DNA of 64,000 nucleotides from Octopus sinensis (GCF_006345805.1 NC_042998.1:169508001-169572000), one strand, 5' to 3'. Shown: positions 6,987 through 53,960, numbered from the stretch's first letter. Notes: a model not told the origin generated them from the letters alone. A program made the numbers and translations.

Positions 6987-7042
<56 letters not shown>

Positions 7043-7340
7043 CAGAATGGGACAAGAAAGCAAAACATCCGGACAACTAGGTGATACAAAAAGGGACAAC
7101 AAAACATCCAGATAGACAATACAAAAAAACAAGGACGGGTCATTAGAAGCTTCCTATCCTCAGTCAAGAACCAGATCATCCTCGCAATTTCGGCTGATTA
7201 ATCTTGACATTGCTCCAATCTGGCCAGCCCCAAGGAAAAACTAAGCTAAGAGAATTAGATTCCTTGGAAAAAAGCATCGAATGTATATGAAAACAGGACG
7301 GCAAAACAGATGATGTTACACGAATATAAATACAAAATAC

Positions 7341-13300: not shown

Positions 13301-16300
13301 AAATCACAGTTGTGGCTGATTCCAGTGCCATCTGACTGGCACTTGTGCTGGTGGCACATAAAAAGCATCACTCGAGTATTGGACCTCACTGAGGCAGTGA
13401 CAGGTGACCAAGACCTTTTGGTGATGGGAAGACCTGCCAAGGCAAGTGAGATTGTAGTTATGATCTTTGGCAGTGTCATGTAAATGGCACTTGTGTTGGT
13501 GACACATAAAAGGCACCCATTACTCTCTTGGCGTGGTTGGCATTAGGAAGGGCATTCAACCGTAGAAACCGTGCTAAATCAGACTTGAACCCGGTGCAGC
13601 TCTCCGGCTTATCGGTTCCAGTCAAATTGTTGAACCCATGTCAGCATGGAAAGCAGATGCTAAATGATGATGATAAAAAGAAGAAAAACTAATCCTTACA
13701 AGCCAGTAAGAGAGCCTCCACATAGTTGCTTAATTTGCTAATAATAGAAATGGATTCTCCTTAAAATCTTTCCTTACCATCTTAAAAGAGGAAGAACACA
13801 TTAGATAATGCGATCCAAAATGTACTGTCTAAAAATGATGGGATAATCACAGTTGAAACACTGTTAATCATAGGTTTGGTCAATCAGAGCTGACCATTCT
13901 CTAACTCTTTATGATCTAAACTGGCTCTACCTAGCCCAAGTATTCTACCTGTTTTATGTTCAATATGACCAGATCCAGCATCTCACACTATAATTTTATT
14001 CTTAAAAAAATACATTCACATCATCAAAATCTTGAAGCCATGAAGCAATGCATGATTAATTCAAGTCAATACGAATAAATAAACATTACATTTTACAGTG
14101 TAATCTGAATCCTAAAAAGATAAACAACAGAAATGTCTGAAAGCTGAGTCTTCCTCCCTCATTGAATGCTGTAGTAAAGCTTGAAATGGCTTATTATAAT
14201 TTTGTACTAGATTAGTTTTATTCCCTCTTTTGTACTCTAGTTTTCACTATACTTTTCTTTCATAGATCCTTTCAGATTCTTTTCTATAATAAAGAAATGT
14301 CACCTTATCAGATATGTAAATGAAATTCTATCATTAACTCAATAAGTTTTGATAAGGATTTCTTGAATCTGTTTATGAGTGCATTTGTTTAGCTATAAAT
14401 TCTGAAAATTGAAATTAATTGTTCTGTTCTGTGTTTTAATGCGTGTATTGTTTACAAAAAATCATTGTTGTCATATCAAAGTAAAATTTTAAACTCTAAA
14501 ATTTCGTTTTCTATCATCTGTAAATGGTAAACTCAACTATTGAGAATCTATTTTAAGCTTGTTTGTAACTTTTCTTACTATTTACCATATTTTCTGGCAT
14601 ATAAGTCAACATTGTATACAGTGTATTAACATTCAAACATTGTGCCTATCTTTCTAAATCCTGCTGCAATTCACATAGAATTTTTGTTCTAAAAAATTTA
14701 ACCTGTATGACAGAAAATATGATATTAATATTTCACTCTTAAGAATTTCTTGAAGTACCAACAAAAAATGAGAAAATTTTCTCCAATTTCATAATTTTTC
14801 ATTTATAAAAACAATAATCTTTTATTTTATTTAATTTAATCACAGTCTCCATGAAGCCATCCAAAATGAAAAAAATTGCAAGATAAAATCTCTTCTTCTT
14901 GACTTGGATCATAGATATGTAAGTTTACATTTCATTTGTAAATGAGAAATGCAGTGTCTATGTTTCAGATCACTGAATCTCAATTACAAAATGTTTTGAG
15001 AGGATATCAAGTTTTATTAACCTTTTAGCATTTAAACCTACCATATCCAACCTAAATAGTCTCTCTATTTTATGTTCAAATTGGCTAGATCTGACCTCTC
15101 ACATCTGACCTCAGTGTTACTCAAAAAATAAACAATCACTTCATCAAAATCTTGAAGCTACAACATAATACTTGATTAATTCAAATCAATGAAAATAAGC
15201 ATTATATTTGCCACAGTAATCTAAACCTCTAAAGGTTAAGGAGTGGTCATATGAACAAACAAAACTTGTGTCTGAAAATAAGGAAATGGGTGGGCAATTT
15301 GATCTTGATTTTATCAAAATTTATTAGGTAAGGTAACTGTGTTTGAATTACAGATGGATGAGGTATTAGATGGCTTGTTAGTGGGTCATGACTTCTAATC
15401 TACCGTATATGTTACATTGAAACTGTGAGATCAGCACTGTGCTGTTGTTCATTTATTTGTTAGTAACAGATACCAGATTATGTAGGAATACTACAAAGTG
15501 ATAGTTGTCAACTTATCTGAGGGAAGATTTGTTTCACCTATTTCATGTCAAGAAACTGGAGCTAAGCAGTGGCTCTTAATGTGACTCCTTCTCTTTGCCC
15601 TTGAAAAAAATATCATGATCATATTACAGGCACAGGTATGACTGTGTGATAAGAAGTTTGCTTCCTAACCACATGGTTCTAGGTACAGTCCCACTGTGTG
15701 GCACCTTGGGCAAGTGTCTTCTACTATAGCCTTGGGCCAACCAAAGCCTTGTGAGTGGATTTGGTAGACGGAAACTGAAAGAAGCCCATCGTATATATGT
15801 ATATATATATCTTTGTGTGTGTATATGTTTGTGTGTCTGTGTTTGTCCCCCCAGCATTGCTTGATAACTGATGCTGGTGTGTTTACATCCCTGTAACTTA
15901 GTGGTTCAGCAAAAGAGACCGATAGAATAAGTACTAGGCTTACAAAGAATAAGTCCTGGGGTCGATTTGCTCGACTAAAGGCAGTGCTTCAGCATGGCTG
16001 CAGTCAAATGACTGAAACAAGTAAAAGAGTAATATATATATATCTGTGTGTGTGTGTGTGTGTGTCTGTACCCCCCACCATCGCTTGACAACTGATGTTG
16101 CTGTGTTTATGTCCCTGCAACTTAGCCTTTTGGCAAAACACACTGATAGAATAAGTACTAGGCTTACAAAGAATAAATCCTGGGGTTGATTTCTTTGACT
16201 GAAGGTGATGCTCCTCTACCACCTTCATTTCTTCTTAGGTAGAATCTGTCAACATCACTGTTTTTGTGGAAGTTCCCAGTTGTTGGCAGTATTTTGCAGG

Positions 16301-17511
16301 TTTTGATATTTATGGAGTGGATTTCCTCTAAAGACCAATCAAATATCCCAAATGTCGGGATCAGTACTGGCACTGCAAATGCATAGTGGGATATTGTTTT
16401 GTTGTAAGAGGAGAGTTCCGACTGCCATATTTTCCTAAATCTGGTGTATGTGTATATGTATGCAATATACTCATACATATACACTTGAATAGTCACAACA
16501 CAAATGGAAGAGAGATAGTAAGGATAAATTGAGTGTTTCATTAAATATATCTGTAACCTATAGCTGTTAGATTCTATATTATACAACAATTTCTCAGTTA
16601 GAATTGTTTTTTTTTTCTCTGATTTTCTTCTTTTTTTTCTTCAGATGCAGGTTTACTCAGATGAAAAATTCTGCCGTTACAACATGTTTAACAACTATTT
16701 TTTCAACAATACAACAGCTTTTGAAAACTATCAAAGGTTCATTGCTGAAGAAGATGCAACGAAGAAATTAGCAGTTGTTTTTGATCCACCTTTTGGATGT
16801 ATGATTGAAGTATTGGCTCATTCTTACAATAATCTACTGAAACAGTGGCAGAGTCTATCGAAAAGTACTGACCTCATTAAATTTTTTTAAATTGTCTTTT
16901 ACACTCTCATCTGTTTCCAAATAAGGTAAAGGACAATGTTTGCATGACAGTGATACTTGTTTACGACTATCACATGATACCAAGGCTAGGTGACACTAAC
17001 ACACACAAAATATATGTTAGCAACAGAGGCAGCGTTAACACCAAGAGATGATGATGATAAACATGGATGCTCTTTCTATTAGAACAAACTTAACTTCAGT
17101 AGTTATCATGAGAGAAACTCTCATATTGGCTTTTTGTTACAAAATGTACCAAGGGGATAAAATACTGTCTCTTCCTAATATATATTTAGCTAATCGTGAC
17201 ACCACTGCCTGTCCTGGTACTGTCAATTTATATATCTCTGGCGAGGAGATCAATCACTGCTGCCTTTAGCAGTCAAGTGTCCATCATTGACAAGACCAAG
17301 CAAGGTTGAAATCACAGGATCTGGTGGTCTTGGTACTGGAGGTAGTGGGGATTTGTCTCCCCACTAGTGATATAAACAAGTGTGCATTTTGCACCAAAAA
17401 TCTAATATGAGAGTTTCTCTCCTAGTAACTACTACTGTAAAGTTTGTTCTAATAGAACATCCATGTTGAAATGGAGATAAATATTTCCTCTCAGTATTAA
17501 TAGTGACTGTC

Positions 17512-17542
<31 letters not shown>

Positions 17543-20500
17543 CACACACACACATCATCATCACCCATATACACGATGGGCTTCTTTCAATCTCCATCAA
17601 ATCCATTCACAAGGCTTTCGTTGGCCCCAAACTATTGTAGAAGACACTTGTTCGAGGTGCCATACAGTGGGACTGACCTCAAACACCATTTGGTTGAGAA
17701 GCAAACTTCTTATTTCTTTATTGCCCACAAGGGGCTAAACATAGAGGGGACAAACAAGGACAGACAAAGGGATTAAGTTGATTATATCGACCCCAGTGCG
17801 TAACTGGTTCTTAATTTATCGACCCTGAAAGGATGAAAGGCAAAGTCGACCTCGGTGGAATTTGAACTCAGAACATGATGGTAAACAAAATACTGCTGAG
17901 CATTTCGCCCGGCATGCTAACGTTTCTGCCAGCTCACCGCCTTCTTACCACACAACTACACCAGTACATTATATGAATTATTAATCTAAAAGCATTTTCA
18001 GTAATAAACTAATATTCAATCTCACCTTTACCATATTTTATTTTCCACGAAAAAAGGACAAATTCAGTTATTGTTATTATTAAATTCAAAGCCTTTTTTT
18101 TTTATATTTCTTCCTTTAGAAACATCTGAAAGTGTATTACCAGCAATAATAATTCTACCATATTTTATGGAAAAGAGAGTTCAAGATTCCTTTACAGGGT
18201 TCTTTATGCTTGATTATAAGGTAAAGTATCATCTGCATATTTTTAATTACAAAGTAAAAAGTGTCATCATCATTATCATATGTTTAGCATCTTCTTTTCC
18301 ATGCCTGCACCTATATATATATATATATTTTTTATTTTATGCAAAACAGATTTCATATACCAATCATCGTCAGTTTACAGAGGAACATTCAGATAAGAAG
18401 TCAACAGTGAGAATATTTACCAATATTGAACGTCATTTGATTCATTTACCTGAAAATGAAGGCTACTGGTATGTAAAAATATGAACTGTCTTTCATCAGC
18501 AGAATTTTCCCTCTCTCCAAATGTTTTCTATGATACAAATGCTGGAAATATACTGCCTTATGATTTAGGGAATTTGGGGAGCTTTTGACTCTACTTTTGA
18601 ACCAGTTTCTTGACTCTGTTTCCTTGGTCCTAGGGAAAAGAAACAGATACCAGTAGCTTCTAATAATCCAAGAAACACTTCGCAATTGCCATGCTTATTA
18701 TACATAAATGGAAAAAGAAAATTATGATTTTTTTAAAGATCACAATAAAAAATAGAATGATTACAACACGGAAGACACACTTTAACCATTCAAGACACAC
18801 AAAAACCATTAACTTCACTTGAATAATTATTATTTGATGTCCAAATTTTTGTAACACCAATTGCAACCTAATCACTGATGCAGTGGAATTATGTGAATGA
18901 CCAGGTAGCTGTTGATACGATGAAGATTATGACACCAAATAAATGTTTAAGTGAAGTTAACAGTTTAAGTGTATTTTTGATTGGCCAATAGGTCTTCCTT
19001 CCTGAAATAATTTTAGATTAAATCACTTGCCTGGTGAGTTCACCATAAAAAAAAAGAAGAAAAAAAAGACTATTGTTCCACTTTCTTCAGTAAAACAAAA
19101 TTAATATTTATCTCATACACTGGTACAATAAGTTGAATCTATTGCCTTGACTGGATTTTTATGATTCAATCAATCAATCTCATACTTTATAATACATACA
19201 GGAAAATGTGTTATAACCAGAAAAACATAAGGATGCCAATAACAGGTTTGAACTTATGATCCATGAGCTGGTTAGTAATTCATTTCATCTGTGCACTTTT
19301 GTTTGATGTGAGTTTTACCATTTTCTCTTGAGTTACATTTATTTAAGTGTATCTTGTTGTTAGTCACAGATTAGAGTTATTTAACAAACCTATAATAAAA
19401 GGCATTCTAGCCATAAACATCATATTTTTTTTGCATACCTATCATTATATTGTTCATGTCCTTCCATTTCAAAAACAGTAGGATGTGATTTGAGAGAGAT
19501 TTGGCTACAATTTCTAGTAGCTTTAGACAATACAGAGAGGATCCCTCATTCACTCGTTTTCATTCATCTATTTCATTTTGGTTGTTGTTGCTGTTAATCT
19601 CAAATCAGCTCTGATGAAGCAAATCTTTAACCAACAGCACATTTATCAAGATAATCACTGGTTCTTCTCATTTTGAAGCTGTGAGTGGGAAATAAACCCA
19701 AATTTCCCACAAAGTTTAATTGCTTCTTTATATTTTCTGATTTTGTTTTATTTTAACTTATTTAATTGTATGTGAGATTTTGTCTGAAAATCCACTAGAC
19801 ACTACATGAGAGGCATTATAACTGAAATGAAACTAATACTATTTTTTTTCTTCCTTAAAATTTTATTTTAATAGGTATTGTGATATATGTTGCTGTTATT
19901 CATCTCCTGAAAACAAACACTGCAATAAATGTGGCAGTTGTACTTCAAAAGTAAATTTTTGTTTTATATTTTAATATTTTTAATGAACTAATTAAAATCA
20001 AGTAATCATATATACATATATAAACAGAATGCCACATCTTGAAAGCTGGAATCAATAATATGTACACACTCATACACATGCACACATATCATTATCATCA
20101 TTTAATGTCTGTTTTCCATGTTGGCATGGGTTGAATGGTTTGACCAAAGCTGGTAAAGCCATAGACCATACCAGGTTTCATAGCCTGTTTTTGTAGATTC
20201 AACATAGATTTAATTGTAAAAATCTCTACTTGTAAACAAAATTTTAAAATGAATTTAAAAATACCTTCAAAAGTCATTGTTTATAGTTTTTCTGTTATAT
20301 TTTAGGATGGCAAGACATATGTCCACTGTGATAAATGTGCAAGATGTGTAAAACCAAACAGAGTTCACTGTGATATTTGCCAAATTTGTCAAACTAATGG
20401 ACATCAGTGTAATGTGAAATCTATGAAATGTAAGTACAGAACTCAAAAAAGAAAGCTATTTAATTTACCTATTATTCTTTAACAATTCTTTCTTAAACAG

Positions 20501-22324
20501 CCTTTCATTTAGAGTTGTTGCATTGTATATAAATAGAATTAAATTATTTTCTCTTAGATTATTCTTCAATTTAAAAGGATATTACAGTTTTGAAACAAAA
20601 GGGATTAGTTTTACCTAGTTCCATCCATCTTCTTCATTTTCTGCCACTATTTTGCCTACATTTGTACAGCATTGGATCTAAGTGACAAAAGCTTGTATAA
20701 CATTTTTGCCACTCACTCACTTGCCATAATAGGTTCCAGTGATAAGCATTGCAAGATGGCTCGGTACTATTGTGACTTCAAGTTTTATGTCAGAGTATCT
20801 TTCTACTAGAAGAGCTGCCTTCCCAATGGCCTTGTCCAAAATAACGAGAGCTTTCTCTATTCATGAGAAATCTATTTAAACCATAGAGAGGACCCTGACA
20901 GATACTACCATGCTCCTCACAACTCCAGAACTCCCAAACTGATGTCTCAACAATGGATGCAGTTTAATGTCATACCCGTATACATTTACATAATGGGCTT
21001 CTTTCAGTTTCCATCTATCAATTTGCTCATGGTGCTATGCGGTGGAACTGAACTCAGCCATATGGTTTGGAAGTGAACTTCTTAACTACTCAATCATGCC
21101 TGTACCCATCATAGATATATGCATGTGTGTGCATGTATGTGTGCATGTTCATGCACATGTGTGTTTATGTCATGACATCACATGATAGTTGTAAATGAGT
21201 ATTGCAGTCATAGAAGTGATGTTGTTAATTTTCCATGAAAACATGTCCTGCTATGAGGAAATTATAAAAACAAGTAAGGGTTGAGGACAGGAAGGGCATC
21301 CAGTTGCAGAATATTTGTCTCAACAAATTCCACCTGACCCATGCAAGCACAGAAAAGTGGAATTAAAATGACGATGATAGTGGTGGTGTACTGTTTTGAA
21401 AATTGTACATCAATTTATCAATTTCTTCAAATATAAATTATTGCTATTCTGCGTTTTGTTTTTTTTTTTATCTGGAAATCACAGATGCCTTCTTTGATAG
21501 CTTCTAGCTCAATCTTTAAAGAAAATTTATTTGACAGCAAAATAAAGAGAAAAATTATCTTTTTCTGAAACTTAAACTTTTAGAACATTTGAGCAGCTTC
21601 ATGTAACTAACTGCTACAAGATATTTAAATCTGGAATGTTTTCTATTGTAAAATATGCAAATGAGATTAGGAAAAGAGGTATGTTTTAAATTAATTTTGT
21701 CATAAATTTTTTAAATTTTATTTTTTTAAGCTGGATGTCATATCTGTGGAGATTTAACTCACAAAAGGAAAGTATGTCCTCAAAGCCAAAGTAATATATT
21801 AAATAAAAGGTAATTCATTTTATGTACATTGAAATTTTGGCTCAAGGTCAGTAAATTTGGGGGCAGGATAATTCAATTACATTGACCCCAGTGCACAACT
21901 GGAACTTATTCTATCAACCCCAGCACACAACTGGAACTTATCCTATTGGCCCCAAAGGGATTAAAGACAAAGTCAACTTCAGCAGAATTTGAACTCAGAA
22001 TGCAAAGACAGACGAAATTCTGCTAAGCATTTAACCCTGCGTGCTAACATTTCTGGCAACTCATTACCTTTATTCATTTTATTCTTTTACTTGTTTCAGT
22101 CATTTGACTGCAGCCATGCTGGTGCACCACCTTTAAGAGTGTTAGTAAAAGAAATCAACTACTGGACTTATTCTTTGTATGCCTAGTACTTATTCTATCA
22201 GTCTCTTTTGCTAAACTGCTAAGTTATGGGGACATAAATACACTAGCATCGGTTGTCAAGCGATGGCTTGGGGACAAACCCAAACACACAAATATATACA
22301 TATATATATATATACACACACACT

Positions 22325-28267: not shown

Positions 28268-28672
28268 CAGGAGTGGCTGTGTGGTAAGTAGCTTGCTTAC
28301 CAACCACATGGTTCCGGGTTCAGTCCAACTGCATGGCACCTTGGGCAAGTGTCTTCTACTATAGCCTTGGGCTGACCAAAGCCTTGTGAGTGGATTTGGT
28401 AGATGGAAACTGAAAGAAGCCTGTCGTATATATGTATATTTATATATATATATGTGTGTGTGTGTGCATTTGTATGTCTGTGTTTGTCGCACAACATCGC
28501 TTGACAACCGATGCTGGTGTGTTTACGTCCTCGTAACTTAGCGGTTCGGCAAAATAGTCTGATAGAATAAGTACTAGGCTTACAAAGAATAAGTTCTGGG
28601 GTCAATTCGCTCGACTAAAGGCAGTGCTCCAGCATGGCCGCAGTCAAATGACTGAAACAAGTAAAAGAGTAG
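28268..28672 (+). mobile_element. SINE family A
   Basis: Full-length match. Confidence 0.85.
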
Positions 28673-36239: not shown

Positions 36240-37790
36240 CATCATCATCATCATCATCCTCATTTAACGTCCATTTTCCATGCTGGCATGGGTTGGATGG
36301 TTTGACATGGAACTGGCCAGCTGGGAGCTGTGCAGATTCCAAATGTCTGTTGTTGCATGGTTTCTATGATTGGATGTCCTTCCAATGCCAACCGCTTAAC
36401 AGAGTGTGCTGGGTGCATTTTATGTGCCACTAGCATGGGTGTGTTTACACAGCTCTGGCACAGGTACGTCTGTGCAACACCAGCATAGGTATGTTTATGC
36501 AGCACCTGCACAAGTGTTTTTCACGTGGCACCAGCACCTGAAAGAACAAGCCTGTATGTGTGGAAGACAGTGTTTTTTCTTAGATTGACGTGTCTTGTCA
36601 AGTACAGTAAATCACATCTCCCAGTCCCTTGTCATTTCCTCAGTGAGGCCCAGCATCTGAAGATCCTTTCTCACTTCGTCCTATGTCTTCTTGGGTCTAC
36701 CCCATCCACAGGTATACTCTACAAACAATAAGAGCTTGGCACTTCTTTACACATTTGTTCTCATCTATGTGCATCACATGACCAAACCAGCACAGTCTTC
36801 TCTCTTGCACACAACATAAGATGCCTCTTATACCCAGTTTTCCTCTTAAATCATTTATATTCTGTTGTGTGTGCACACTGGCATTACCCATCCAGCAGAG
36901 CATGCTAGCTTCATTTCTTTCAAGCTTTTGCAATCTCTCTGTAGTCAAAGCCCATGTAACATGGCTGTATGTACACAAGCATCATACAATCTGCCTTTCA
37001 CTGAGGGAGAAGCTGTTAGTTACCAACAAAGGCGAAGCTCTCTGAACATTTTTATTCTAGCAACTACACTTTCAGGACTTCTCCCACAACTGCTAACTTG
37101 ATCTCCTGGGTAACAGAAGTTATCTACTTCTTCTAATGATCCCCGAGCATTTGCATATTTTTAGTATTTATTGTATCTGTGCATTTACCACATACAAAGA
37201 CTATATTCTCTGTTAACTTTCCTGTGCACTGGGTACAACATATGAAGTTTCTACAAACACCTTTCTTACATACAGAGCTGGGCCATCTCCCAGAAGGGAC
37301 TTGTAATTTGTCTGTTTTCCTGCTTACTTTGGTTTTTACTAAATCAACTCTAAGGCCCTTAGATTCTAAGCCATGCTTCCATACCAGAATTTTTTTTCTC
37401 TAGGTCAGGTAGTGATTCAGCTATAAGAACAAGGTCATCAGTGTAGAGGAGCTCCCAGGAACAGCTGGTCTTGAATTCATCTGTTGAGGCTTGGAAGACT
37501 AAGATAAACAAGAGGGGGCTGGGAACTGAATTTTGGTGAAATACCTGTACACTGAATTCATTTCTATACTCATTACCAACATTCACCTTACAGGCAGCAT
37601 CCCTGTGCATGGTTTGTACAGCTCTCATTAATCACTCATCTATCCCTAGCTTCAGCATTGACCACCAGATACAGGAGCGGGTAACCCTGTCCAAGACTTT
37701 CTCCATGTCAACAAAAGCCAAGACAGGAGGTTTATTTTTGACTAAATACTTCTCCTGAAGTTGCTGTATATTACATACATTAAGTAGAGC
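36240..37790 (-). mobile_element. 5'-truncated, degenerate RTE-clade LINE (RT C-terminal half and 3' tail)
   Basis: Minus-strand peptides SPLLFILV...ELLYTDDLVLIAES, GRLYDACV and RRLCWFGHVM; ends in a (GAT)n tail. Confidence 0.85.
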
Positions 37791-39402: not shown

Positions 39403-41129
39403 TGTGTCTGTGTTTGTCCCCCCAACATCGTTAGACAACCAATACTGGTGTGTTAACGTCCCTGTAACTTAGCAGTTCGGCAAAAGAGACTGATAGAATA
39501 ACTACTAGGCTTACAAAGAATAAGTCCTGGGGTCGATTAGCTCGACTAAAGGTGGTGTTCCAGCATGGCCCCAGTCAAATGACTGAAACAAGTAAAAGAG
39601 TAAAGCATAAAGAGTATCCTAAACATGAGGTTTTGGGTTCACTCCCACTGCATGACTCCCTGTGGCCATGCTGGGGCACTAATTTGAAAGGTTTTGGTTA
39701 AACAAATCCAGTAAATTAGATCATTTTCATTCATTTTTTATGAGTGATAGTTTTCTAGTAGGGTTTTAGGGAACAAAAACAGTATTTATGAAATATATGA
39801 GTAGATGGGTGTGTGAGTGCTTGAATTTTTCTTTGTGCTTCAGTGTGAGCAAGCAATTAGGTGAAGAAGAAGCCTAGGAAGGACACAGCTTGCTTGATAT
39901 TTTCATACTTGTGGATAAGTTTCATGCTTGAAGAATTTGATCTGTAAATATTTTAAGGATGGTTGAAAGGGTTTGTGGTAGATGTGAGTTTAGAATAATA
40001 AATATGCACGGGATTGGTTTCAGAAAAGAAAAAGAAAATTTATAGAAGAAAGCTGCTTTTGTTTAACAGCCAGAAAATTGACCACACAACCTGTCAACAC
40101 TAGGGAATTAATAGACTTTCATTTCATTTTTATATTCATAGGTGTTGTGTTATGAAACTGTCATTTATGGTATAAATTACCTACTAAATCTTTTGTAATG
40201 AGTTCCCTATCAGATAATGCTTACTCACTGTATAAGCATAAACCTAGATATATTAAGCATCCATAACATTATGATGTAAATGGGTCAAGTAATCCTTGGG
40301 GTGCTGCTCCAGACATACTGGCAGTGAACAACTCTGTGAAAATATCTTGTTTTTGAAGGAGTTATGAATAAGCAATAGCTAAATTTCTTTGGTCAAAATA
40401 TTAAATCTGTGAAATAAAACTAATTTTATAGAGTTCACTATTGATCTCCTTGATCTTTGATTGAAGAATTTACAGTGTGTGTGTGTGTGTACATCTATAT
40501 GTGTCTGTGTTTGTGTCCCCACCTCCATTTGACAAACCAACTTGAGTTGGTTTGTTTATGTTCAGCAAAAGAGACTGATAGAATAAGTACCAGGCTTTGA
40601 AAAATCAGTCCAGGGGTTGATTCATTTATTTAAAAAAATTTTTATGGTGGTGCTCCAGCATGGCCACAGTCTAATGACTGAAACAAATAAAAGACAAAAG
40701 ATATATAATGATTTTATTTAGGAGTTGTAATACTAATAACCTGTTGTTACAACTCTGTATTTTTATGATTTAGAGTGAAGCATCTGGTGAGAACAGAGCA
40801 TATCAATTAATGAAGCACAAAAAAGCAGGAGTTATGTGATCACTTTCATTGGCTTATGGTCGTTTCTGTTACAAGAAGCATTGCCCATAGATCTGAGTGC
40901 TTGTTCAACATCTTATAGTCTCCTCAAAGCCATTTACATGAAATGTGTGTTTATTTTAGAATGCATTCGAATATATAGAGTTGGTTACATTTAGAACCTT
41001 ATGCTGAAGAGCATTTTTGCTATTGTTTAATAGTCTTGCAGCAGCAACAGTCCCGCAACATCATCATGTCATAAGCATTGATTACAATTACATTTCAAAT
41101 TATTACAATCTAAACAAACTCATATTATA

Positions 41130-41530
41130 CTCTTTTACTCGTTTCAGTCATTTGACTGTGGCCATGCTGGAGTACTGCCTTTAGTTGATCGAGCAAATCG
41201 ACCCTGGAACTTATTCTTTGTAAGCCTAGTACTTATTCTATCGGTCTCTTTTGCTGAACCGCTAAGTTACAGGGATGTAAACACACCACCATCGGTTGTC
41301 GAGTGATGGGGGGGGGGGGGGCAAACACAGACACACAAACATATACGCACACATACATATATATACGATGGGCTTCTTTCAGTTTCCATCTACAAAATCC
41401 ACTCACAAGGCTTTGGTTGGCTCAAGGCTCTAGTAGAAGACACTTGCCCAAGGTGCCATGCAGTGGGACTGAACCCAGAACCATGTGGTTCGTAAGCAAG
41501 CTACTTACCACACAACCACTCCTATGCCTA
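41130..41530 (-). mobile_element. SINE family A
   Basis: Full-length reverse-complement match. Confidence 0.85.
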
Positions 41531-43049: not shown

Positions 43050-43795
43050 ATACAAACCTGAGACCAAACCGTTAATCTGCTAATCGTTAATTAATGAAGT
43101 TGAGATTTTTGTCAACAATTTAACTTTTAAGTTTACTTTGGAAAACATTATCAGATTAATTAACTTCTGTTACATTTAACTTCCATTAATCAGTTAATTA
43201 TTTAAAAATATAATGGAAGTTATTGATAAACCATTAATGTTCATTTTTATTATAGAAAGAAACAAAAAATTAGTCTTTGCTATAAAAACACCTTTAAAAA
43301 GTGCCAAAACTATAAAATCAGCTATTTTTGGCCCTCTTAAAGGCTTTAGAAACCCCAAACTATAGTTTTTTGCTTGAGAGTTAAAAAATGGTGATTTTAT
43401 AGTTTTAACTTTTAAAAGACCTAAGAAAGGCTGATTTCATAGTTTTGGTGCTTTTGAGGGTTTTTAAAGGCTTTTAGAGCCAGAAAAGGGTAAAAAGAGT
43501 GTCATGTTCAAGAGACCCTATAGGACAACCATGGCCAAGGCATGTGCCCACTGGAACCAGCAAGATCGCAGCACTGTGGCAGCAGACAGCATCTACACAG
43601 AGGTGGGGAGGAGGCTGGTAGTCCGCAATATGATGAGGTGGCGTTTCACCTATGACTCTTTGGTGGTCCTCAACACCATTCTGGAGACTAAGAGGCCTGT
43701 TCTCCGCAGAGTCATGACCCAGTTGAAGGTCAACAGCTTCAATGACCAGGATGTCAACTTAATGAAGGAGTATACCAAGATAATAAATTAATACT
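43050..43795 (+). mobile_element. hAT transposase remnant with subterminal repeats and a small TIR element (~43285-43470)
   Basis: ORF 43504-43791 ...LVVRNMMRWRFTYDSL... resembles the hAT P-x-x-TRWNS motif region. It is short and has no flanking exons. Confidence 0.55.
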
Positions 43796-44305
43796 AAAAT
43801 AATATTACATTATAATATATATATTATTTTGATATATACTAGCTGGATCAATGAAAACTTCATGGTAAACATTAAAAAATGTAAGCATCTATAAATTGTT
43901 TGCTGGTGCCATGAGAAATGCTGGTGTATTGTGACATTTACAGAATACAGAAAGAAGTGTAAAACTGATAACTATATAATCCAACTAAAATATTTCAGTT
44001 ACGCAAACATAAATAGAATTACTATTTAGCCTTAAAATACATCGTACATATTCAAAGAACCTTCTTGGTTTAGTGGTATGCAATGTTCTTCTGGTATGCA
44101 TTTATTCTTTTACTTGTGTCAGTCATTTGACTGTGGCTATGCTGGAGCACTGCCCTTTAGTCAAAGAAATCAACCCCTGGACTTATTACTTGTAAGCCTG
44201 GTGCTTATTCTATCAGTCTCTTCTGTCGACCACCTAAGTTACAGGGATGCAAACACACCAACATCAGACGCAAACATACACACATAAATATCTATCTGTC
44301 TGTCT

Positions 44306-44354
<49 letters not shown>

Positions 44355-44472
44355 CAATTAAGGAACGGCCATAATAGGCCATTCACCCACTAGAAATAAC
44401 AGCCAGAGCTTCTACCGCAAATAAAGATCAATTCCGTAAACAGGAGAAAATTAAAAAAACATTTACCCTGTA

Positions 44473-44578
44473 ATTTCTTGTACGGTATACCGTTTCATCC
44501 GCTGTTTAATGGTAAACTAACCTGATTAAATTAAATCAAGCTAATCTTCCATAAGCCCTCGGATTCTTCAGCAGAAAT
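44473..44578 (-). ncRNA. Type I hammerhead ribozyme, inverted copy
   Basis: Reverse complement of the forward motif; one base missing in the helix I 5' strand. Confidence 0.8.
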
Positions 44579-45131
44579 AGCTCAAGTCGGAACAGATATT
44601 TACACGAGGCATACCCAATCTTGCCAAGGCATATCTGACCTAAAATTTTCAAATCGTCGCACTCGCGCCAAATTTATCGGCAGCAATAAATATCAGCCGT
44701 CGATTCCATTACGGAATTAACCAAAAAATTCATAATTAATCAATATAGGGTGGCAAGGAAATTTTTTTAATTTTCTCCTGTTTACGGAATTGATCTTTAT
44801 TTGCGGTAGAAGCTCTGGCTGTTATTTCTAGTGGGTGAATGGCCTATTATGGCCGTTCCTTAACTGTTAATGTTGAACTTAAAAATGGTCTATGACTATT
44901 TAAATTTTTTCCCACTGGGCCGCTGGTGGCAATAAAATTCTACAAAATTTTCCTTGCCACCCTATATTGATTAATTATGAATTTTTTGGTTATTCCGTAA
45001 TGGAATCGACGGCTGATATTTATTTGCTGCCGATAAATTTGGCGCGAGTGCGACGATTTGAAAATTTTAGGTCAGATATTGCTTGGCAAGATTGGGTATG
45101 CCTCGTGTAAATATCTGTTCCGACTTGAGCT

Positions 45132-45237
45132 ATTTCTTGCTGAAGAATCCGAGGGCTTATGGAAGATTAGCTTGATTTAATTAATCAGGTTAGTTTACCA
45201 TTAAACAGCGGATGAAACGGTATACCGTACAAGAAAT
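45132..45237 (+). ncRNA. Type I hammerhead ribozyme, copy 1
   Basis: Helix I ATTTCTTG (45132-39) pairs with CAAGAAAT (45230-37). Core CTGAAGA is at 45140-46. Helix II ATCCG...CGGAT spans 45147-45213, followed by GAAA at 45214-17. Helix III is ACGG-TATA-CCGT. The cleavage triplet is GUA, with the cut after 45229. Confidence 0.9.
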
Positions 45238-45624
45238 TACAGGGTAAATGTTTTTTTAATTTTCTCCTGTTTACGGAATTGATCTTTATATTTGCGGTAG
45301 AAGCTCTGGCTGTTATTTCTAGTGGGTGAATGGCCTATTATGGCCGTTCCTTAATTGTTAATGTTGAACTTAAAAATGGTCTATGACTATTTAAATTTTT
45401 TCCCACTGGGCCGCTGGTGGCAATAAAATTCTACAAAATTTTCCTTGCCACCCTATATTGATTAATTATGAATTTTTTGGTTAATTCCGTAATGGAATCG
45501 ACGGCTGATATTTATTTGCTGCCGATAAATTTGGCGCGAGTGCGACGATTTGAAAATTTTAGGTCAGATATTGCCTTGGCAAGATTGGGTATGCCTCGTG
45601 TAAATATCTGTTCCGACTTGAGCT

Positions 45625-45730
45625 ATTTCTTGCTGAAGAATCCGAGGGCTTATGGAAGATTAGCTTGATTTAATTTATCAGGTTAGTTTACCATTAAACA
45701 GCGGATGAAACGGTATACCGTACAAGAATT
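45625..45730 (+). ncRNA. Type I hammerhead, copy 2
   Basis: Same motif; one A missing in the helix I 3' strand. Confidence 0.85.
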
Positions 45731-46114
45731 ACAGGGTAAATGTTTTTTTAATTTTCTCCTGTTTACGGAATTGATCTTTATTTGCGGTAGAAGCTCTGGC
45801 TGTTATTTCTAGTGGGTGAATGGCCTATTATGGCCGTTCCTTAATTGTTAATGTTGAACTTAAAAATGGTCTATGACTATTTAAATTTTTTCCCACTGGG
45901 CCGCTGGTGGCAATAAAATTCTACAAAATTTTCCTTGCCACCCTATATTGATTAATTATGAAATTTTTGGTTAATTCCGTAATGGAATCGACGGCTGATA
46001 TTTATTTGCTGCCGATAAATTTGGCGCGAGTGCGACGATTTGAAAATTTTAGGTCAGATATTGCCTTGGCAAGATTGGGTATGCCTCGTGTAAATATCTG
46101 TTCCGACTTGAGCT

Positions 46115-46219
46115 ATTTCTTGCTGAAGAATCCGAGGGCTTATGGAAGATTAGCTTGATTTATTTAATCAGGTTAGTTTACCATTAAACAGCGATGAAAC
46201 GGTATACCGTACAAGAAAT
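46115..46219 (+). ncRNA. Type I hammerhead, copy 3
   Basis: Same motif; CGGAT>CGAT in helix II. Confidence 0.8.
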
Positions 46220-46605
46220 TACAGGGTAATGTTTTTTTTTTAATTTTCTCCTGTTTACGGAATTGATCTTTATTTGCGGTAGAAGCTCTGGCTGTTATTT
46301 CTAGTGGTGAATGGCCTATTATGGCCGTTCCTTAATTGTTAATGTTGAACTTAAAAATGGTCTATGACTATTTAAATTTTTTCCCACTGGGCCGCTGGTG
46401 GCAATAAAATTCTACAAAAATTTCCTTGCCACCCATATATTGATTAATTATGAATTTTTTGGTTAATTCCGTAATGGAATCGACGGCTGATATTTATTTG
46501 CTGCCGATAAATTTGGCGCGAGTGCGACGATTTGAAAATTTTAGGTCAGATATTGCCTGGCAAGATTGGGTATGCCTCGTGTAAATATCTGTTCCGACTT
46601 GAGCT

Positions 46606-46711
46606 ATTTCTTGCTGAAGAATCCGAGGGCTTATGGAAGATTAGCTTGATTAATTTAATCAGGTTAGTTTACCATTAAACAGCGGATGAAACGGTATACC
46701 GTACAAGAAAT
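46606..46711 (+). ncRNA. Type I hammerhead, copy 4
   Basis: Core and helices intact. Confidence 0.88.
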
Positions 46712-47095
46712 TACAGGGTAAATGTTTTTTTAATTTTCTCCTGTTTACGGAATTGATCTTTATTTGCGGTAGAAGCTCTGGCTGTTATTTCTAGTGGGTG
46801 AATGGCCTATTATGGCCGTTCCTTAATTGTTAATGTTGAACTTAAAAATGGTCTATGACTATTTAAATTTTTTCCCACTGGGCCGCTGGTGGCAATAAAA
46901 TTCTACAAAATTTTCCTTGCCACCCATATTGATTAATTATGAATTTTTTGGTTAATTCCGTAATGGAATCGACGGCTGATATTTATTTGCTGCCGATAAA
47001 TTTGGCGCGAGTGCGACGATTTGAAAATTTTAGGTCAGATATTGCCTTGGCAAGATTGGGTATGCCTCGTGTAAATATCTGTTCCGACTTGAGCT

Positions 47096-47200
47096 ATTTC
47101 TTGCTGAAGAATCCGAGGGCTTATGAAGATAGCTTGATTTAATTTAATCAGGTTAGTTTACCATTAAACAGCGGATGAAACGGTATACCGTACAAGAAAT
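47096..47200 (+). ncRNA. Type I hammerhead, copy 5
   Basis: Core intact; small indels in distal helix II. Confidence 0.85.
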
Positions 47201-47582
47201 TACAGGGTAAATGTTTTTTTAATTTTCTCCTGTTTACGGAATTGATCTTTATTTGCGGTAGAAGCTCTGGCTGTTATTTCTAGTGGGTGAATGGCCTATT
47301 ATGGCCGTTCCTTATTGTTAATGTTGAACTTAAAAATGGTCTATGACTATTTAAATTTTTTCCCACTGGGCCGCTGGTGGCAATAAAATTCTACAAAATT
47401 TTCCTTGCCACCCTATATGATTAATTATGAATTTTTTTGTTAATTCCGTAATGGAATCGACGGCTGATATTTATTTGCTGCCGATAAATTTGGCGCGAGT
47501 GCGACGATTTGAAAATTTTAGGTCAGATATTGCCTTGGCAAGATTGGGTATGCCTCGTGTAAATATCTGTTCGACTTGAGCT

Positions 47583-47688
47583 ATTTCTTGCTGAAGAATC
47601 CGAGGCTTATGGAAGATTAGCTTGATTTAATTTAATCAGGTTAGTTTACCATTAAACAGCGGATGAAACGGTATACCGTACAAGAAAT
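47583..47688 (+). ncRNA. Type I hammerhead, copy 6
   Basis: Core and proximal helices intact. Confidence 0.86.
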
Positions 47689-48070
47689 TACAGGGTAAAT
47701 GTTTTTTTAATTTTCTCCTGTTTACGGAATTGATCTTTATTTGCGGTAGAAGCTCTGGCTGTTATTTCTAGTGGGTGAATGGCCTATTATGGCCGTTCCT
47801 TAATTGTTAATGTTGAACTTAAAAATGGTCTATGACTATTTAAATTTTTTCCCACTGGCCGCTGGTGGCATAAAATTCTACAAAATTTTCCTTGCCACCC
47901 TATATTGATTAATTATGAATTTTTTTGTTAATTCCGTAATGGAATCGATGGCTGATATTATTTGCTGCCGATAAATTTGGCGCGAGTGCGACGATTTGAA
48001 AATTTTAGGTCAGATATTGCCTTGGCAAGATTGGGTATGCCTCGTGTAAATATCTGTTCCGACTTGAGCT

Positions 48071-48174
48071 ATTTCTTGCTGAAGAATCCGAGGGCTTATG
48101 GAAGATAGCTTGATTAATTTAATCAGGTTAGTTTACCATTAAACAGCGATGAAACGGTATACCGTACAAGAAAT
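48071..48174 (+). ncRNA. Type I hammerhead, copy 7
   Basis: Same motif; CGGAT>CGAT in helix II. Confidence 0.8.
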
Positions 48175-48557
48175 TACAGGGTAAATGTTTTTTTAATTTT
48201 CTCCTGTTTACGGAATTGATCTTTATTTGCGGTAGAAGCTCTGGCTGTTATTTCTAGTGGGTGAATGGCCTATTATGGCCGTTCCTTAATTGTTAATGTT
48301 GAACTTAAAAATGGTCTATGACTATTTAAATTTTTTCCACTGGGCCGCTGGTGGCAATAAAATTCTACAAAATTTTCCTTGCCACCCTATATTGATTAAT
48401 TATGAATTTTTTGGTTAATTCCGTAATGGAATCGACGGCTGATATTTATTTGCTGCCGATAAATTTGGCGCGAGTGCGACGATTTGAAAATTTTAGGTCA
48501 GATATTGCCTTGGCAAGATTGGGTATGCCTCGTGTAAATATCTGTTCGACTTGAGCT

Positions 48558-48664
48558 ATTTCTTGCTGAAGAATCCGAGGGCTTATGGAAGATTAGCTTG
48601 ATTTAATTTAATCAGGTTAGTTTACCATTAAACAGCGGATGAAACGGTATACCGTACAAGAAAT
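48558..48664 (+). ncRNA. Type I hammerhead, copy 8
   Basis: Core and helices intact. Confidence 0.88.
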
Positions 48665-49048
48665 TACAGGGTAAATGTTTTTTTATTTTCTCCTGTTTAC
48701 GGAATTGATCTTTATTTGCGGTAGAAGCTCTGGCTGTTATTTCTAGTGGGTGAATGGCCTATTATGGCCGTTCCTTAATTGTTAATGTTGAACTTAAAAA
48801 TGGTCTATGACTATTTAAATTTTTTCCCACTGGGCCGCTGGTGGCAATAAAATTCTACAAAATTTTCCTTGCCACCCTATATTGATTAATTATGAATTTT
48901 TTGGTTAATTCCGTAATGGAATCGATGGCTGATATTTATTTGCTGCCGATAAATTTGGCGCGAGTGCGACGATTTGAAAATTTTAGGTCAGATATTGCCT
49001 TGGCAAGATTGGGTATGCCTCGTGTAAATATCTGTTCCGACTTGAGCT

Positions 49049-49155
49049 ATTTCTTGCTGAAGAATCCGAGGGCTTATGGAAGATTAGCTTGATTTAATTT
49101 AATCAGGTTAGTTTACCATTAAACAGCGGATGAAACGGTATACCGTACAAGAAAT
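49049..49155 (+). ncRNA. Type I hammerhead, copy 9
   Basis: Core and helices intact. Confidence 0.88.
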
Positions 49156-49539
49156 TACAGGGTAAATGTTTTTTTAATTTTCTCCTGTTTACCGGAATTG
49201 ATCTTTATTTGCGGTAGAAGCTCTGGCTGTTATTTCTAGTGGGTGAATGGCCTATTATGGCCGTTCCTTAATTGTTAATGTTGAACTTAAAAATGGTCTA
49301 TGACTATTTAAATTTTTTCCCACTGGGCCGCTGGTGGCAATAAAATTCTACAAAATTTTCCTTGCCACCCTATATTGATAATTATGAATTTTTTGGTTAA
49401 TTCCGTAATGGAATCGACGGCTGATATTTATTTGCTGCCGATAAATTTGGCGCGAGTGCGACGATTTGAAAATTTTAGGTCAGATATTGCCTTGGCAAGA
49501 TGGGTATGCCTCGTGTAAATATCTGTTCCGACTTGAGCT

Positions 49540-49646
49540 ATTTCTTGCTGAAGAATCCGAGGGCTTATGGAAGATTAGCTTGATTTAATTTAATCAGGTT
49601 AGTTTACCATTAAACAGCGGATGAAACGGTATACCATACAAGAAAT
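49540..49646 (+). ncRNA. Type I hammerhead, copy 10 (GUA>AUA variant)
   Basis: CCGTA>CCATA breaks the C-G pair next to the core. Confidence 0.7.
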
Positions 49647-50028
49647 TACAGGGTAATGTTTTTTTAATTTTCTCCTGTTTACGGAATTGATCTTTATTTG
49701 CGGTAAAGCTCTGGCTGTTATTTCTAGTGGGTGAATGGCCTATTATGGCCGTTCCTTATTGTTAATGTTGAACTTAAAAATGGTCTATGACTATTTAAAT
49801 TTTTTCCCACTGGGCCGCTGGTGGCAATAAAATTCTACAAAATTTTCCTTGCCACCCTATATTGATTAATTATGAATTTTTTGGTTAATTCCGTAATGGA
49901 ATCGATGGCTGATATTTATTTGCTGCCGATAAATTTGGCGCGAGTGCGACGATTTGAAAATTTTAGGTCAGATATTGCCTTGGCAAGATTGGGTATGCCT
50001 CGTGTAAATATCTGTTCCGACTTGAGCT

Positions 50029-50136
50029 ATTTCTTGCTGAAGAATCCGAGGGCTTATGGAAGATTAGCTTGATTTAATTTAATCAGGTTAGTTTACCATT
50101 AAACAGCGGATGAAACGGTATATACCGTACAGAAAT
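50029..50136 (+). ncRNA. Type I hammerhead, copy 11
   Basis: Helix III loop is TATATA; one A missing in helix I. Confidence 0.8.
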
Positions 50137-50520
50137 TACAGGGTAAATGTTTTTTTAATTTTCTCCTGTTACGGAATTGATCTTTATTTGCGGTAGAAGC
50201 TCTGGCTGTTATTTCTAGTGGGTGAATGGCCTATTATGGCCGTTCCTTAATTGTTAATGTTGAACTTAAAAATGGTCTATGACTATTTAAATTTTTTCCC
50301 ACTGGGCCGCTGGTGGCAATAAAATTCTACAAAATTTTCCTTGCCACCCTATATTGATTAATTATGAATTTTTTGGTTAATTCCGTAATGGAATCGACGG
50401 CTGATATTTATTTGCTGCCGATAAATTTGGCGCGAGTGCGACGATTTGAAAATTTTAGGTCAGATATTGCCTTGGCAAGATTGGGTATGCCTCGTGTAAA
50501 TATCTGTTCCGACTTGAGCT

Positions 50521-50627
50521 ATTTCTTGCTGAAGAATCCGAGGGCTTATGGAAGATTAGCTTGATTTAATTTAATCAGGTTAGTTTACCATTAAACAGCG
50601 GATGAAACGGTATACCATACAAGAAAT
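50521..50627 (+). ncRNA. Type I hammerhead, copy 12 (GUA>AUA variant)
   Basis: Same CCATA variant as copy 10. Confidence 0.7.
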
Positions 50628-51039
50628 TACAGGGTAAATGTTTTTTTAATTTTCTCCTGTTTACGGAATTGATCTTTATTTGCGGTAGAAGCTCTGGCTG
50701 TTATTTCTAGTGGGTGAATGGCCTATTATGGCCGTTCCTTAATTGTTAATGTTGAACTTAAAAATGGTCTATGACTATTTAAATTTTTTCCCACTGGGCC
50801 GCTGGTGGCAATAAAATTCTACAAAATTTTCCTTGCCACCCTATATTGATTAATTATATATATATATATATATATAAAATACAAATACAAAATGGGACAT
50901 GAATGCAAAACATCCGGACAACTAGGTGATACAAAAAGGGACAACAAAACATCCAGATAGACGATACAAAAAAACAAGGACGACTCATTTGAAGCTTTCT
51001 ATCCTCAGTCAAGAACCGGATCATCCTCTGCAAGGAAAC

Positions 51040-52190
51040 TTTCCACAACATTCTATGTACAAATTGGTTTGTTTTCTCCAAAAGATCATATATATATAAT
51101 CCTTCCTGCTGGGTATAGGTATGTTCTTTAGAGAAACATCCAGAGTTATTTTATCCATCATCTTAGTGTGCTACCTTATAGCACCTACCTCTCAGAAATT
51201 GGTTGTGGTTATTGGATATTAAAATGAATGGTTTACACCTGATAGCTAACTGGTAAAGCATGGTCACTCTCACAGATTGTTATGTATACAGCAAATGAAA
51301 GAAGGAAGACAAGTTTATCATCCTCTGATGAATTCATAGTTGGAGCATATGCACTTATGAGTGTTGCATAGCGATTTTTTCTTAATGGAAGTCTTAAAGA
51401 CATTAAACAATCCGAATGACCACATGGTAGTTTCTCAAGTTTTGAAGCCAGAGTGGTTTTGATGGCAAATCCCACTCCTGATTTTCTCTTATAGGTTTTC
51501 TCTCTACCACTCCAAAATAAATGATTCCCAGCAGATTTCTCTAAAAAAATTCCCCTTTCCATGAATTCTTGTTTTGGCTAACATTACATACAACATCCAT
51601 ATCATATCGCTGTAACTCTTTTGCAACAAGCGTGGATCTTCTCTCTGGATGAGATTTCAGACAATCATTGTCTAATAATGTTCGAACATTCCAGCATCCT
51701 ATATTCATAGGCTTGTATCTTAACTTGAATTTACTCACAGTTGCAGGATGATACCTGCTAGGCCAGACCACAGAACAAAATGTTCCCGAGCCCTTTTTGC
51801 CATTTGCTTCATTATCAATAAGAACTTTCATTGTTTAGATGTGCCTTTTTAAGCTTCAGCCAGCCATGTACATACAAGATGTCCATTTCTTTTTCCTCTC
51901 CAGCAATACATGTGCTTGACACTTTTTAAAGTGAGGAAAAGTTTTGCACAGCAACCATTCCCACTCTCTAAACTACAAAGCATTATCCAAAAAGAAGAGC
52001 AAGTTGACATCATTGGGTGTATTTGCAGTCGCAGGTTTTATATCAGAGTGTCCTTCTCCCAGTCTTTGCCCAACCAAAGGCTAACTACAAGACAGCAGTG
52101 AAGTATTTAAGTTCAGAGTTACTTTCTCCTGGGTAGATTGCCTTTGCCATGGCTTAGGTAAACAGAGGAGCTCTATCCACCCCTAATCTA
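51040..52190 (-). mobile_element. RTE-clade LINE 5' UTR and apurinic endonuclease fragment
   Basis: IGCWNVRTLLD...LVAKELQRYDMDVV; FWSG...SGVGFAIK...LISAYAPT; frameshifted. Confidence 0.85.
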
Positions 52191-53137: not shown

Positions 53138-53339
53138 CATATATAAACACACACACATATACATATACGCACATACATATACGCACATATATATATATAC
53201 ACATATATATATATATATAATATATATATATATACACATACATATATATATATACACACATACATATATATACATATACACACACACACACATATATATA
53301 TATATACATACATATATATATATACATACATATATATAT

Positions 53340-53371
<32 letters not shown>

Positions 53372-53398
53372 ATACATATATATATATACATAAATATA

Positions 53399-53430
<32 letters not shown>

Positions 53431-53572
53431 CATATATATATATACATACATATATATATATATATACATACATATATATATATACATACATATATATATA
53501 TATATACATACATATATATATATACATACATATATATATATATACATACATATATATATATATACATACATA

Positions 53573-53606
<34 letters not shown>

Positions 53607-53611
53607 CATAC

Positions 53612-53642
<31 letters not shown>

Positions 53643-53666
53643 CATACTTATATATATATATTTATA

Positions 53667-53721
<55 letters not shown>

Positions 53722-53881
53722 ATACATACATATATATATATATATATACATACATACATATATATATATATACATACATACATATATATATACATACATA
53801 CATATATATATACATACATACATATATATATATATACATACATACATATATATATATATACATACATACATATATATATAT

Positions 53882-53930
<49 letters not shown>

Positions 53931-53960
53931 ATATAATATATATATACGTGTGTGTGTGTG
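53138..53960. repeat. ~820 bp compound (TA)n/(TACA)n microsatellite
   Basis: Directly visible; explains the Y/I/M/C-rich spurious ORFs at 52911-53977. Confidence 0.97.

Follow-up and report, generated by a model that had tools for sequence, protein, structure and literature searches.

A 6.5-kb block of 492-bp hammerhead-bearing repeats in Octopus sinensis: probably a young retrozyme insertion in a (TA)n tail

What kind of element is a block of ~6.5 kb in the genome of Octopus sinensis, in which ~13 near-identical non-coding repeats stand side by side, each with a hammerhead ribozyme (HHR) motif? The block lies in a stretch of 64,000 nucleotides (GCF_006345805.1, NC_042998.1:169508001-169572000), called the window below; positions are counted from its first letter, and features are listed in Table 1. 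That tandem repeats of animals can carry hammerheads has been known since 1987. In 2020 such repeats with type I hammerheads were described from coral, mussel and axolotl, and the class received the name non-long-terminal-repeat (non-LTR) retrozymes (Cervera and de la Pena, PMC7229834). Multimeric transcripts of animal retrozymes self-cleave, an RtcB-type ligase circularises the products, and a reverse transcriptase (RT) acting in trans would copy them back to DNA (PMC7229834; bioRxiv 10.64898/2026.07.22.740005). The octopus block is probably a young insertion of this kind, i.e. a non-autonomous, non-coding non-LTR retrozyme in tandem 492-bp units, each with a type I hammerhead.

The forward array was delimited by Tandem Repeats Finder (TRF) at 44762-50857 (plus strand; period 492, 12.4 copies, 98% matches). 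An earlier model-made interpretation of the same DNA (the sequence-only reading) had described a near-identical array starting at 44350; this position is the outer end of an inverted copy, and the description holds. Exact-string search for helix I/CUGAAGA/helix II gave 12 forward motif starts (45132-50521; spacing 487-493 bp) and one minus-strand motif (C3 at 44571), the same count of forward and inverted copies as had been proposed. Cutting at the predicted cleavage sites yielded eleven full units of 486-493 nt (consensus 492 nt, GC 36.6%); the monomer given as an example in the earlier interpretation, 45230-45722, is exactly one of them. The inverted copy was compared with the consensus by the basic local alignment search tool (BLAST) against a consensus trimer: 98.4% identity to the reverse-complemented consensus over 430 bp, no substitutions, three one-base deletions. 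No further copy of the unit, even partial, was found in the window outside the block.

The inverted copy and the first forward unit together (44350-45170) form an inverted repeat of ~410 bp that is almost free of spacer; its read-through would yield a long RNA hairpin, a possible source of small RNAs.

The motif consensus is AUUUCUUG-CUGAAGA-AUCCG-(58 nt)-CGGAU-GAAA-CGG-UAUA-CCG-UA/CAAGAAAU, where the slash is the predicted cleavage site. It holds all invariant core positions: C3 U4 G5 A6 N7 G8 A9, G12 A13 A14, the A15.1-U16.1 pair and a non-G residue (A) at position 17. The topology is type I: helix I, 8 bp, open; helix II, 5 bp plus a 58-nt arm, closed; helix III, 4 bp, closed by a UAUA loop. 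The predicted cut follows the GUA, at the boundary of consensus positions 492 and 1. The core elements CUGAAGA, GAAA, the A-U pair and GUA are present in 13/13 copies.

A structural descriptor was written from hammerhead rules and run on the window and, as a control, on 300 Markov-1 random 64-kb sequences. It matched nothing outside the array in the window and nothing in the 300 random sequences, relaxed thresholds (5, 4, 3 bp) included. For a 115-nt region of the unit 8 copy, unconstrained folding gave the hammerhead three-way junction as the minimum free energy (MFE) structure (-35.8 kcal/mol, z -5.7; 0/200 shuffles as good), with the 58-nt insert predicted to extend helix II as a long, imperfectly paired hairpin. 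As regards a tertiary contact of helix I with loop 2, the former is a simple duplex of 8 bp, and helix II, after its 5 bp, opens into an internal loop and continues as the long arm; in mussel retrozyme HHRs the archetypal helix I/loop 2 contacts are missing (PMC7229834). The stem-loop ACGGUAUACCGU is palindromic, and a double hammerhead would therefore also be conceivable.

Comparison with Rfam hammerhead models, suggested as a check in the sequence-only reading, gave a divided answer. Hammerhead_1 (RF00163) aligned over its full model (1-45; E 0.0038) at 21.4 bits, under the gathering score of 34, and in a search of 151 nt only; the scans returned no hammerhead at the gathering threshold in the 64-kb window and none at E<=10 in 44000-51500 (7.5 kb). 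According to the alignment, the shortfall is due to the 58-nt loop 2 insertion and a longer loop 3. The same alignment has A10.1-U11.1 in place of the model's G10.1-C11.1: both sides are changed and the pair is kept. On the opposite strand of the unit no ribozyme was found by Rfam scan or by descriptor, so that the element has a ribozyme in one polarity only. As modelled, the motif is a structurally complete type I hammerhead with predicted catalysis, formally below the curated Rfam threshold.

Could it be a degenerate or chance look-alike, inactive and carried by an ordinary satellite? The score under the gathering threshold, the unusual 10.1-11.1 pair, a 58-nt helix II insertion that displaces the usual loop 2, and the lack of covariation support would suit such a look-alike. 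It is nevertheless very improbable: all invariant core positions and the three helices are present, 300 x 64 kb of random sequence gave no descriptor match, the MFE structure is the hammerhead fold, and low-GC tandem repeats of animal genomes, like this one, are where type I hammerheads typically occur (PMC7229834).

The unit RNA was folded as a linear 492-nt monomer (z -6.1) and as a circle (MFE -144.5 kcal/mol, 60% paired, z -6.1). Open reading frames (ORFs) of the unit reach at most 67 aa. An ORF of 66 aa had no homologue among 5.8 billion proteins and no encoding contig; this protein collection is evidently devoid of animal proteomes, since exons of the ZCCHC4-like gene of the window (see below) gave one 51% match only. 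Collections that cover, among others, assembled public sequencing runs did not contain the unit ORF either. Metagenome contigs had no match to the HHR pattern or to a 23-mer of the unit, and viral contigs none to the HHR pattern. The sole match in genome contigs to the two-part HHR pattern, in a Methanosarcina metagenome-assembled genome (JBNAKO010000012.1 L001 1932-2021, minus strand), lies in a coding region and is devoid of helices I and III; with ~0.13 chance matches expected for the pattern in these contigs, it was read as chance and rejected. LTRs, a primer-binding site (PBS) and a polypurine tract (PPT) were not found in the block, which has no terminal repeat besides the unit itself.

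The state of the single copies is given in Table 1. Descriptor search of the motifs as assembled passed 7/13, six with helices of 8/5/4 bp and one (45625) with 6/5/4 bp. The statement of the sequence-only reading that every unit has all hammerhead elements is thus right for the consensus, which is complete, and too broad for the copies as assembled, of which only these seven are intact. The array contains 36 single-base deletions, 33 of them in homopolymer runs of >=2 (59% of positions lie in such runs). This is the pattern of uncorrected long-read errors, and several of the lesions may therefore not be real. Substitutions amount to ~0.25% across the array. Two variants are shared by alternate units (partial two-unit periodicity, 47681-50857): 271C>T is common to units 6, 8 and 10, and 490G>A, which breaks helix III, to units 9 and 11.

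How the block came to its place can be read in part from its flanks. It is bordered by (TA)n on both sides. The right-flank repeat, with its (TA)n tail, has a paralogue at 7 kb in which the tail is an uninterrupted (TA)25, and the sequences left of the two (TA)n tracts, at the array locus and at the 7-kb paralogue, bear no relation to each other; accordingly, the most plausible reading is that the (TA)n is a retroelement tail into which the ribozyme block was inserted. With TRF, (TA)n accounts for ~0.6% of the window (2% with the complex tract at 53 kb included), so small a share that landing in one by chance is unlikely. The outer ends of the block are at TTAA and TTAATTA, next to TATA, and microhomology is found at all three junctions. 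At the inner junction the phases differ: the inverted copy is there at ~consensus 207/194 and the forward array at consensus 22. The insertion looks recent, because substitutions are so few and the inverted copy has none. The suggestion of a young insertion made in the sequence-only reading is thereby strengthened by the (TA)n on both sides, the (TA)25 of the paralogue, the out-of-phase inverted copy, the three microhomology junctions and the absence of substitutions from the inverted copy.

The right-flank repeat itself (176 bp) is probably the 3' end of a long or short interspersed nuclear element (LINE or SINE).

Two explanations that dispense with such an insertion have to be weighed against these junctions. 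According to the first, the block is a local satellite with an incidental hammerhead, comparable to newt satellite 2 or the pDo500 of crickets, that was amplified and inverted by unequal crossing-over or replication template switching, with no reverse transcription at this place. The variants shared by alternate units suggest a two-unit block duplication after the insertion or independent of it, only one locus is visible, no helper element is found in the window, and (TA)n tracts are fragile and could attract any rearrangement. This origin is unlikely, however: the block falls precisely within a (TA)n tail of which the paralogous flank copy has an unbroken version, microhomology marks the two outer ends as well as the inner junction, divergence is extremely low in the inverted copy as elsewhere, and inverted truncated plus tandem copies are the published integration signature of Penelope-like elements (PLEs; PMC8557442). 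According to the second, the number of copies, or the inverted copy, was produced by faulty assembly (a long-read fold-back chimera or a mis-assembled repeat). The deletions concentrated in homopolymers point to an uncorrected long-read consensus, and tandem and inverted structures of the PLE kind are known to trouble assemblies (PMC8557442). A fold-back chimera would, however, be a perfect palindrome, whereas the two arms meet here at ~207 and 22; since they are out of phase, a simple fold-back chimera of sequencing is ruled out and was dropped. The inverted copy is moreover anchored in unique left-flank sequence, and an artefact in any form is the least credible of the explanations considered.

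For a retrozyme insertion the following course is proposed. Transcription of the plus strand would give multimeric RNA, in which each hammerhead would fold into the three-way junction and, as the in silico fold and the conserved core predict, cut just 3' of the GUA; the products would be 492-nt monomers ending in a 5'-OH and a 2',3'-cyclic phosphate. Their circularisation, a step established for other animal retrozymes, would fall to an RtcB-type tRNA ligase of the host. An RT in trans, most likely that of a PLE, would then copy the circular or multimeric RNA at the nicked (TA)n. To judge from the architecture, one strand would be primed at the UUAAUUA site in the RNA and extended over the 12.4 units, the other would be primed at the UUAA site and give the inverted 0.85 unit, and the two cDNAs would be joined at T/A-rich microhomology (twin-primed reverse transcription). 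The locus would in that case be a near-pristine record of integration, with priming guided by microhomology from both sides of a (TA)n break on circular or multimeric ribozyme RNA and with array and inverted copy laid down in a single event; this further claim is made tentatively and is somewhat doubtful. No promoter for plus-strand transcription was identified; a candidate RNA polymerase III (Pol III) A/B-box promoter in the unit was rejected, the match being too weak.

As to a helper element, Pfam search of ten candidate ORF fragments gave only a weak RVT_1 match and a GRF zinc finger, and the single YxDD motif found in the window by regular expression has a LINE-like context. By these searches, and in agreement with the sequence-only reading, neither a PLE RT nor a GIY-YIG ORF is found in the array or in the window; the block could thus be no more than a non-autonomous passenger. 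PLE insertions are known to include partial tandems, an adjacent inverted 5'-truncated copy and, in some clades (Naiads), a preference for (TA)n targets (PMC8557442). The octopus block shares with PLEs the partial tandems, the adjacent inverted 5'-truncated copy, the (TA)n microsatellite target and the hammerhead in the repeated part (PMC8557442); it differs from them in having no RT/GIY-YIG ORF and in its hammerhead, which is canonical and not minimal, and the PLE 'tail' of 30-40 bp was not recognised here.

Is the block then only the pseudo-LTR (pLTR) part of a PLE, as an ORF-less deletion derivative or an array of solo pLTRs, and not an independent retrozyme family? PLE pLTRs do carry hammerheads and form tandem and inverted structures (PMC8557442), and retrozymes are sister to PLE pLTRs in a 2026 preprint (bioRxiv 10.64898/2026.07.22.740005). 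Yet no RT or GIY-YIG ORF is found in or beside the array, and most PLE hammerheads are of a minimal form in which helix III is very short (PMC7229834), whereas helix III is here a stable 4-bp helix with a tetraloop. A looser descriptor for the minimal Penelope-type hammerhead found none in the window outside the array and none in random sequence. The pLTR origin is accordingly held to be quite improbable.

With the metazoan non-LTR retrozymes of PMC7229834 the block has in common head-to-tail non-coding units each with a type I HHR, low GC (below 45-50% in the class) and strongly self-paired RNA; like them it is devoid of LTR, PBS, PPT and ORF, the arrays of the class ranging from dimers to large multimers. 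A stable helix III closed by a tetraloop is found in invertebrate retrozymes (PMC7229834) as here. By analogy, the 4-bp helix III resembles that of the efficient invertebrate ribozymes and not that of the dimer-dependent amphibian or Penelope-type variants (PMC7229834). Two differences were noted, viz. the extra 58-nt arm of helix II and the unit length, 492 bp against about 170-400 nt in the metazoan retrozymes of PMC7229834. The sequence-only reading had taken a unit of ~490 nt to be unusually large. This does not stand: the pDo500 hammerhead satellite of Dolichopoda cave crickets has units of 463-505 bp (PMC2837043), and consensus lengths of retrozyme families span 51-972 bp in a 2026 survey (bioRxiv 10.64898/2026.07.22.740005). 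Of its retrozyme interpretation as a whole, the motif is real and those retrozyme features that can be tested in silico are present; the exceptional size is not borne out, and the Rfam gathering score is missed.

The nearest likeness in size, pDo500, is also a tandem repeat of ~500 bp with one type I hammerhead per unit, and its multimeric transcripts are processed to monomers (PMC2837043, PMC2808323). It differs from the octopus block in being a major satellite (~5% of a genome) conserved across species, as against a single short array with the hallmarks of recent insertion, and in its compact hammerhead (49 nt, versus ~106 nt here). Plant LTR retrozymes (PMC4918200) are likewise non-autonomous, and a hammerhead-delimited RNA expected to circularise is common to both; unlike the octopus block, they have type III hammerheads in two LTRs, a PBS, a PPT, 4-bp target-site duplications and GC above 55%, none of which is found here. 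From viroid-like and deltavirus-like circular RNA replicons the element is set apart by its ribozyme in one polarity only and by being encoded in genomic DNA.

Several points weigh against a retrozyme insertion. All of the evidence is sequence and predicted structure from one locus, transcription, cleavage and circles being inferred, and in the 64-kb window the unit is visible at that one locus only. The motif brings no Rfam family to its gathering score (21.4 vs 34 bits). The A10.1-U11.1 pair is unusual and may lower activity. Comparative covariation is missing because no relative was found in the searched collections, and 6/13 motifs as assembled have a lesion. There is no shortage of variants in the ribozyme region, and nothing in the array therefore shows selection on the motif, as would be expected for a young insertion. 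The variants shared by alternate units are not predicted by rolling-circle copying of a single monomer circle; they call for a multimeric or dimeric template or for a later two-unit duplication. Neither Pfam on the ten candidate ORF fragments nor simple regular expressions brought up a Penelope-type RT or GIY-YIG in the window. Finally, the T7 run and the AATAAA hexamer of each unit could limit long multimeric transcripts; a Pol III stop is expected at the T run.

The T7 run begins 21 nt past the predicted cleavage site (consensus 22-28) and the hexamer lies at consensus 191-196. In the copy at 48678-48683 the run has six T against seven in the consensus.

Apart from its legible junctions and its helix II arm, discussed below, the element is otherwise an ordinary member of the already known animal retrozyme class. 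That animal retrozymes give rise to abundant small circular RNAs has been recognised recently, and their mobility is still argued from indirect evidence. As a young copy with junctions that can still be read, the block could be used to illustrate the link proposed between retrozymes and PLEs; were it a single-event integration record, its structure would testify, for one locus, to the mobilisation of retrozymes by Penelope-type machinery. PLEs have been reported in several cephalopods. For a squid genome, 235 Rfam hits to type I hammerheads have been recorded, as have Penelope elements (PMC6962438). No published description of a cephalopod retrozyme was found in the searched literature, and a true retrozyme at this locus would be the first described from cephalopods. 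A textbook core with a 58-nt helix II arm was missed by the standard Rfam scan of the window; such retrozymes may therefore be under-counted in genome annotations.

Table 1. Coordinates of the array, its hammerhead motifs (HHR 1-12 and inverted copy), its flanks and neighbouring features in the window.
Feature	Position	Strand	Remarks
Forward array	44762-50857	+	Consensus 22 at start to consensus 238 at end (...GATTAATTA/TATATA); TRF, unit alignment, BLAST
Inverted 5'-truncated unit copy, ~0.85 unit	44350-44761	-	Own strand ~consensus 207 to 492 to 131; 3' end ...AATTGTTAA abuts (TA)n
Inner junction	44762-44774	.	T/A-rich; aligns to both inverted copy and forward array (overlapping BLAST alignments)
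HHR, inverted copy	44473-44578	-	Helix I 5' strand short one T as assembled; predicted cleavage between 44481 and 44480
HHR 1	45132-45237	+	Intact, helices I/II/III 8/5/4 bp; predicted cleavage after A at 45229
HHR 2	45625-45729	+	Helix I 3' strand short one A, 6 bp left; still passes descriptor
HHR 3	46115-46219	+	One G lost from helix II 3' strand (homopolymer GG)
HHR 4	46606-46711	+	Intact
HHR 5	47096-47200	+	Core and helices intact; helix II arm with small deletions
HHR 6	47583-47688	+	Intact
HHR 7	48071-48174	+	One G lost from helix II 3' strand
HHR 8	48558-48664	+	Intact; copy used for folding and RF00163 match
HHR 9	49049-49155	+	Intact
HHR 10	49540-49646	+	G16.2>A, giving C.A mismatch in helix III
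HHR 11	50029-50136	+	Extra TA in loop 3; helix I 3' strand short one A
HHR 12	50521-50627	+	G16.2>A, giving C.A mismatch in helix III
Left (TA)n microsatellite	44305-44351	.	Abuts outer end of inverted copy; TRF period 2, 23.5 copies
Right (TA)n	~50856-50877	.	Abuts 3' end of forward array; sequence read
Right-flank repeat, 3' end of minus-strand retroelement with (TA)n tail	50858-51033	-	92% identical to 7011-7187 (BLAST)
Paralogous 'empty' comparator of right-flank repeat	6989-7187	-	Uninterrupted (TA)25 at 6989-7039; TRF, BLAST
Degraded LINE-like RT fragment	36700-37631	-	YTDD motif, weak Pfam RVT_1; not Penelope-like in look
Degraded LINE-like fragment	51236-51834	-	Endonuclease-type N-terminal region in look, no Pfam match; not Penelope-like in look
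ZCCHC4-like exon	8432-8671	+	GRF zinc finger
ZCCHC4-like exon	16564-16887	+	DPPFG methyltransferase motif
ZCCHC4-like exon	20306-20479	+	Cysteine-rich region
ZCCHC4-like exon	~21736-21830	+	CCHC knuckle, then stop
Other SINE-like copies, examples	15868-16032, 39446-39609, 41128-41293, 28510-28671, 3192-3351		

The remainder of the window holds one recognisable gene and several repeats. Exons on the plus strand match human ZCCHC4 (PDB 6UCA; E 5.7e-26) and belong to a ZCCHC4-like rRNA m6A methyltransferase gene; the array is on the same strand, ~22.5 kb downstream of the last recognisable exon. A SINE-like family of ~165 bp is present in many copies of 77-85% identity, of which that at 44102-44267 forms the left flank of the array; no tRNA-like head of this family was found by ARAGORN. 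Just left of the array, at 43468-43788 (plus strand), there is a stop-free stretch of 107 aa, protein-like and with no Pfam match, which may be a transposase remnant. The complex (TA)n/(TACA)n microsatellite at 53139-53947 (800 bp) gives spurious long ORFs on the minus strand.

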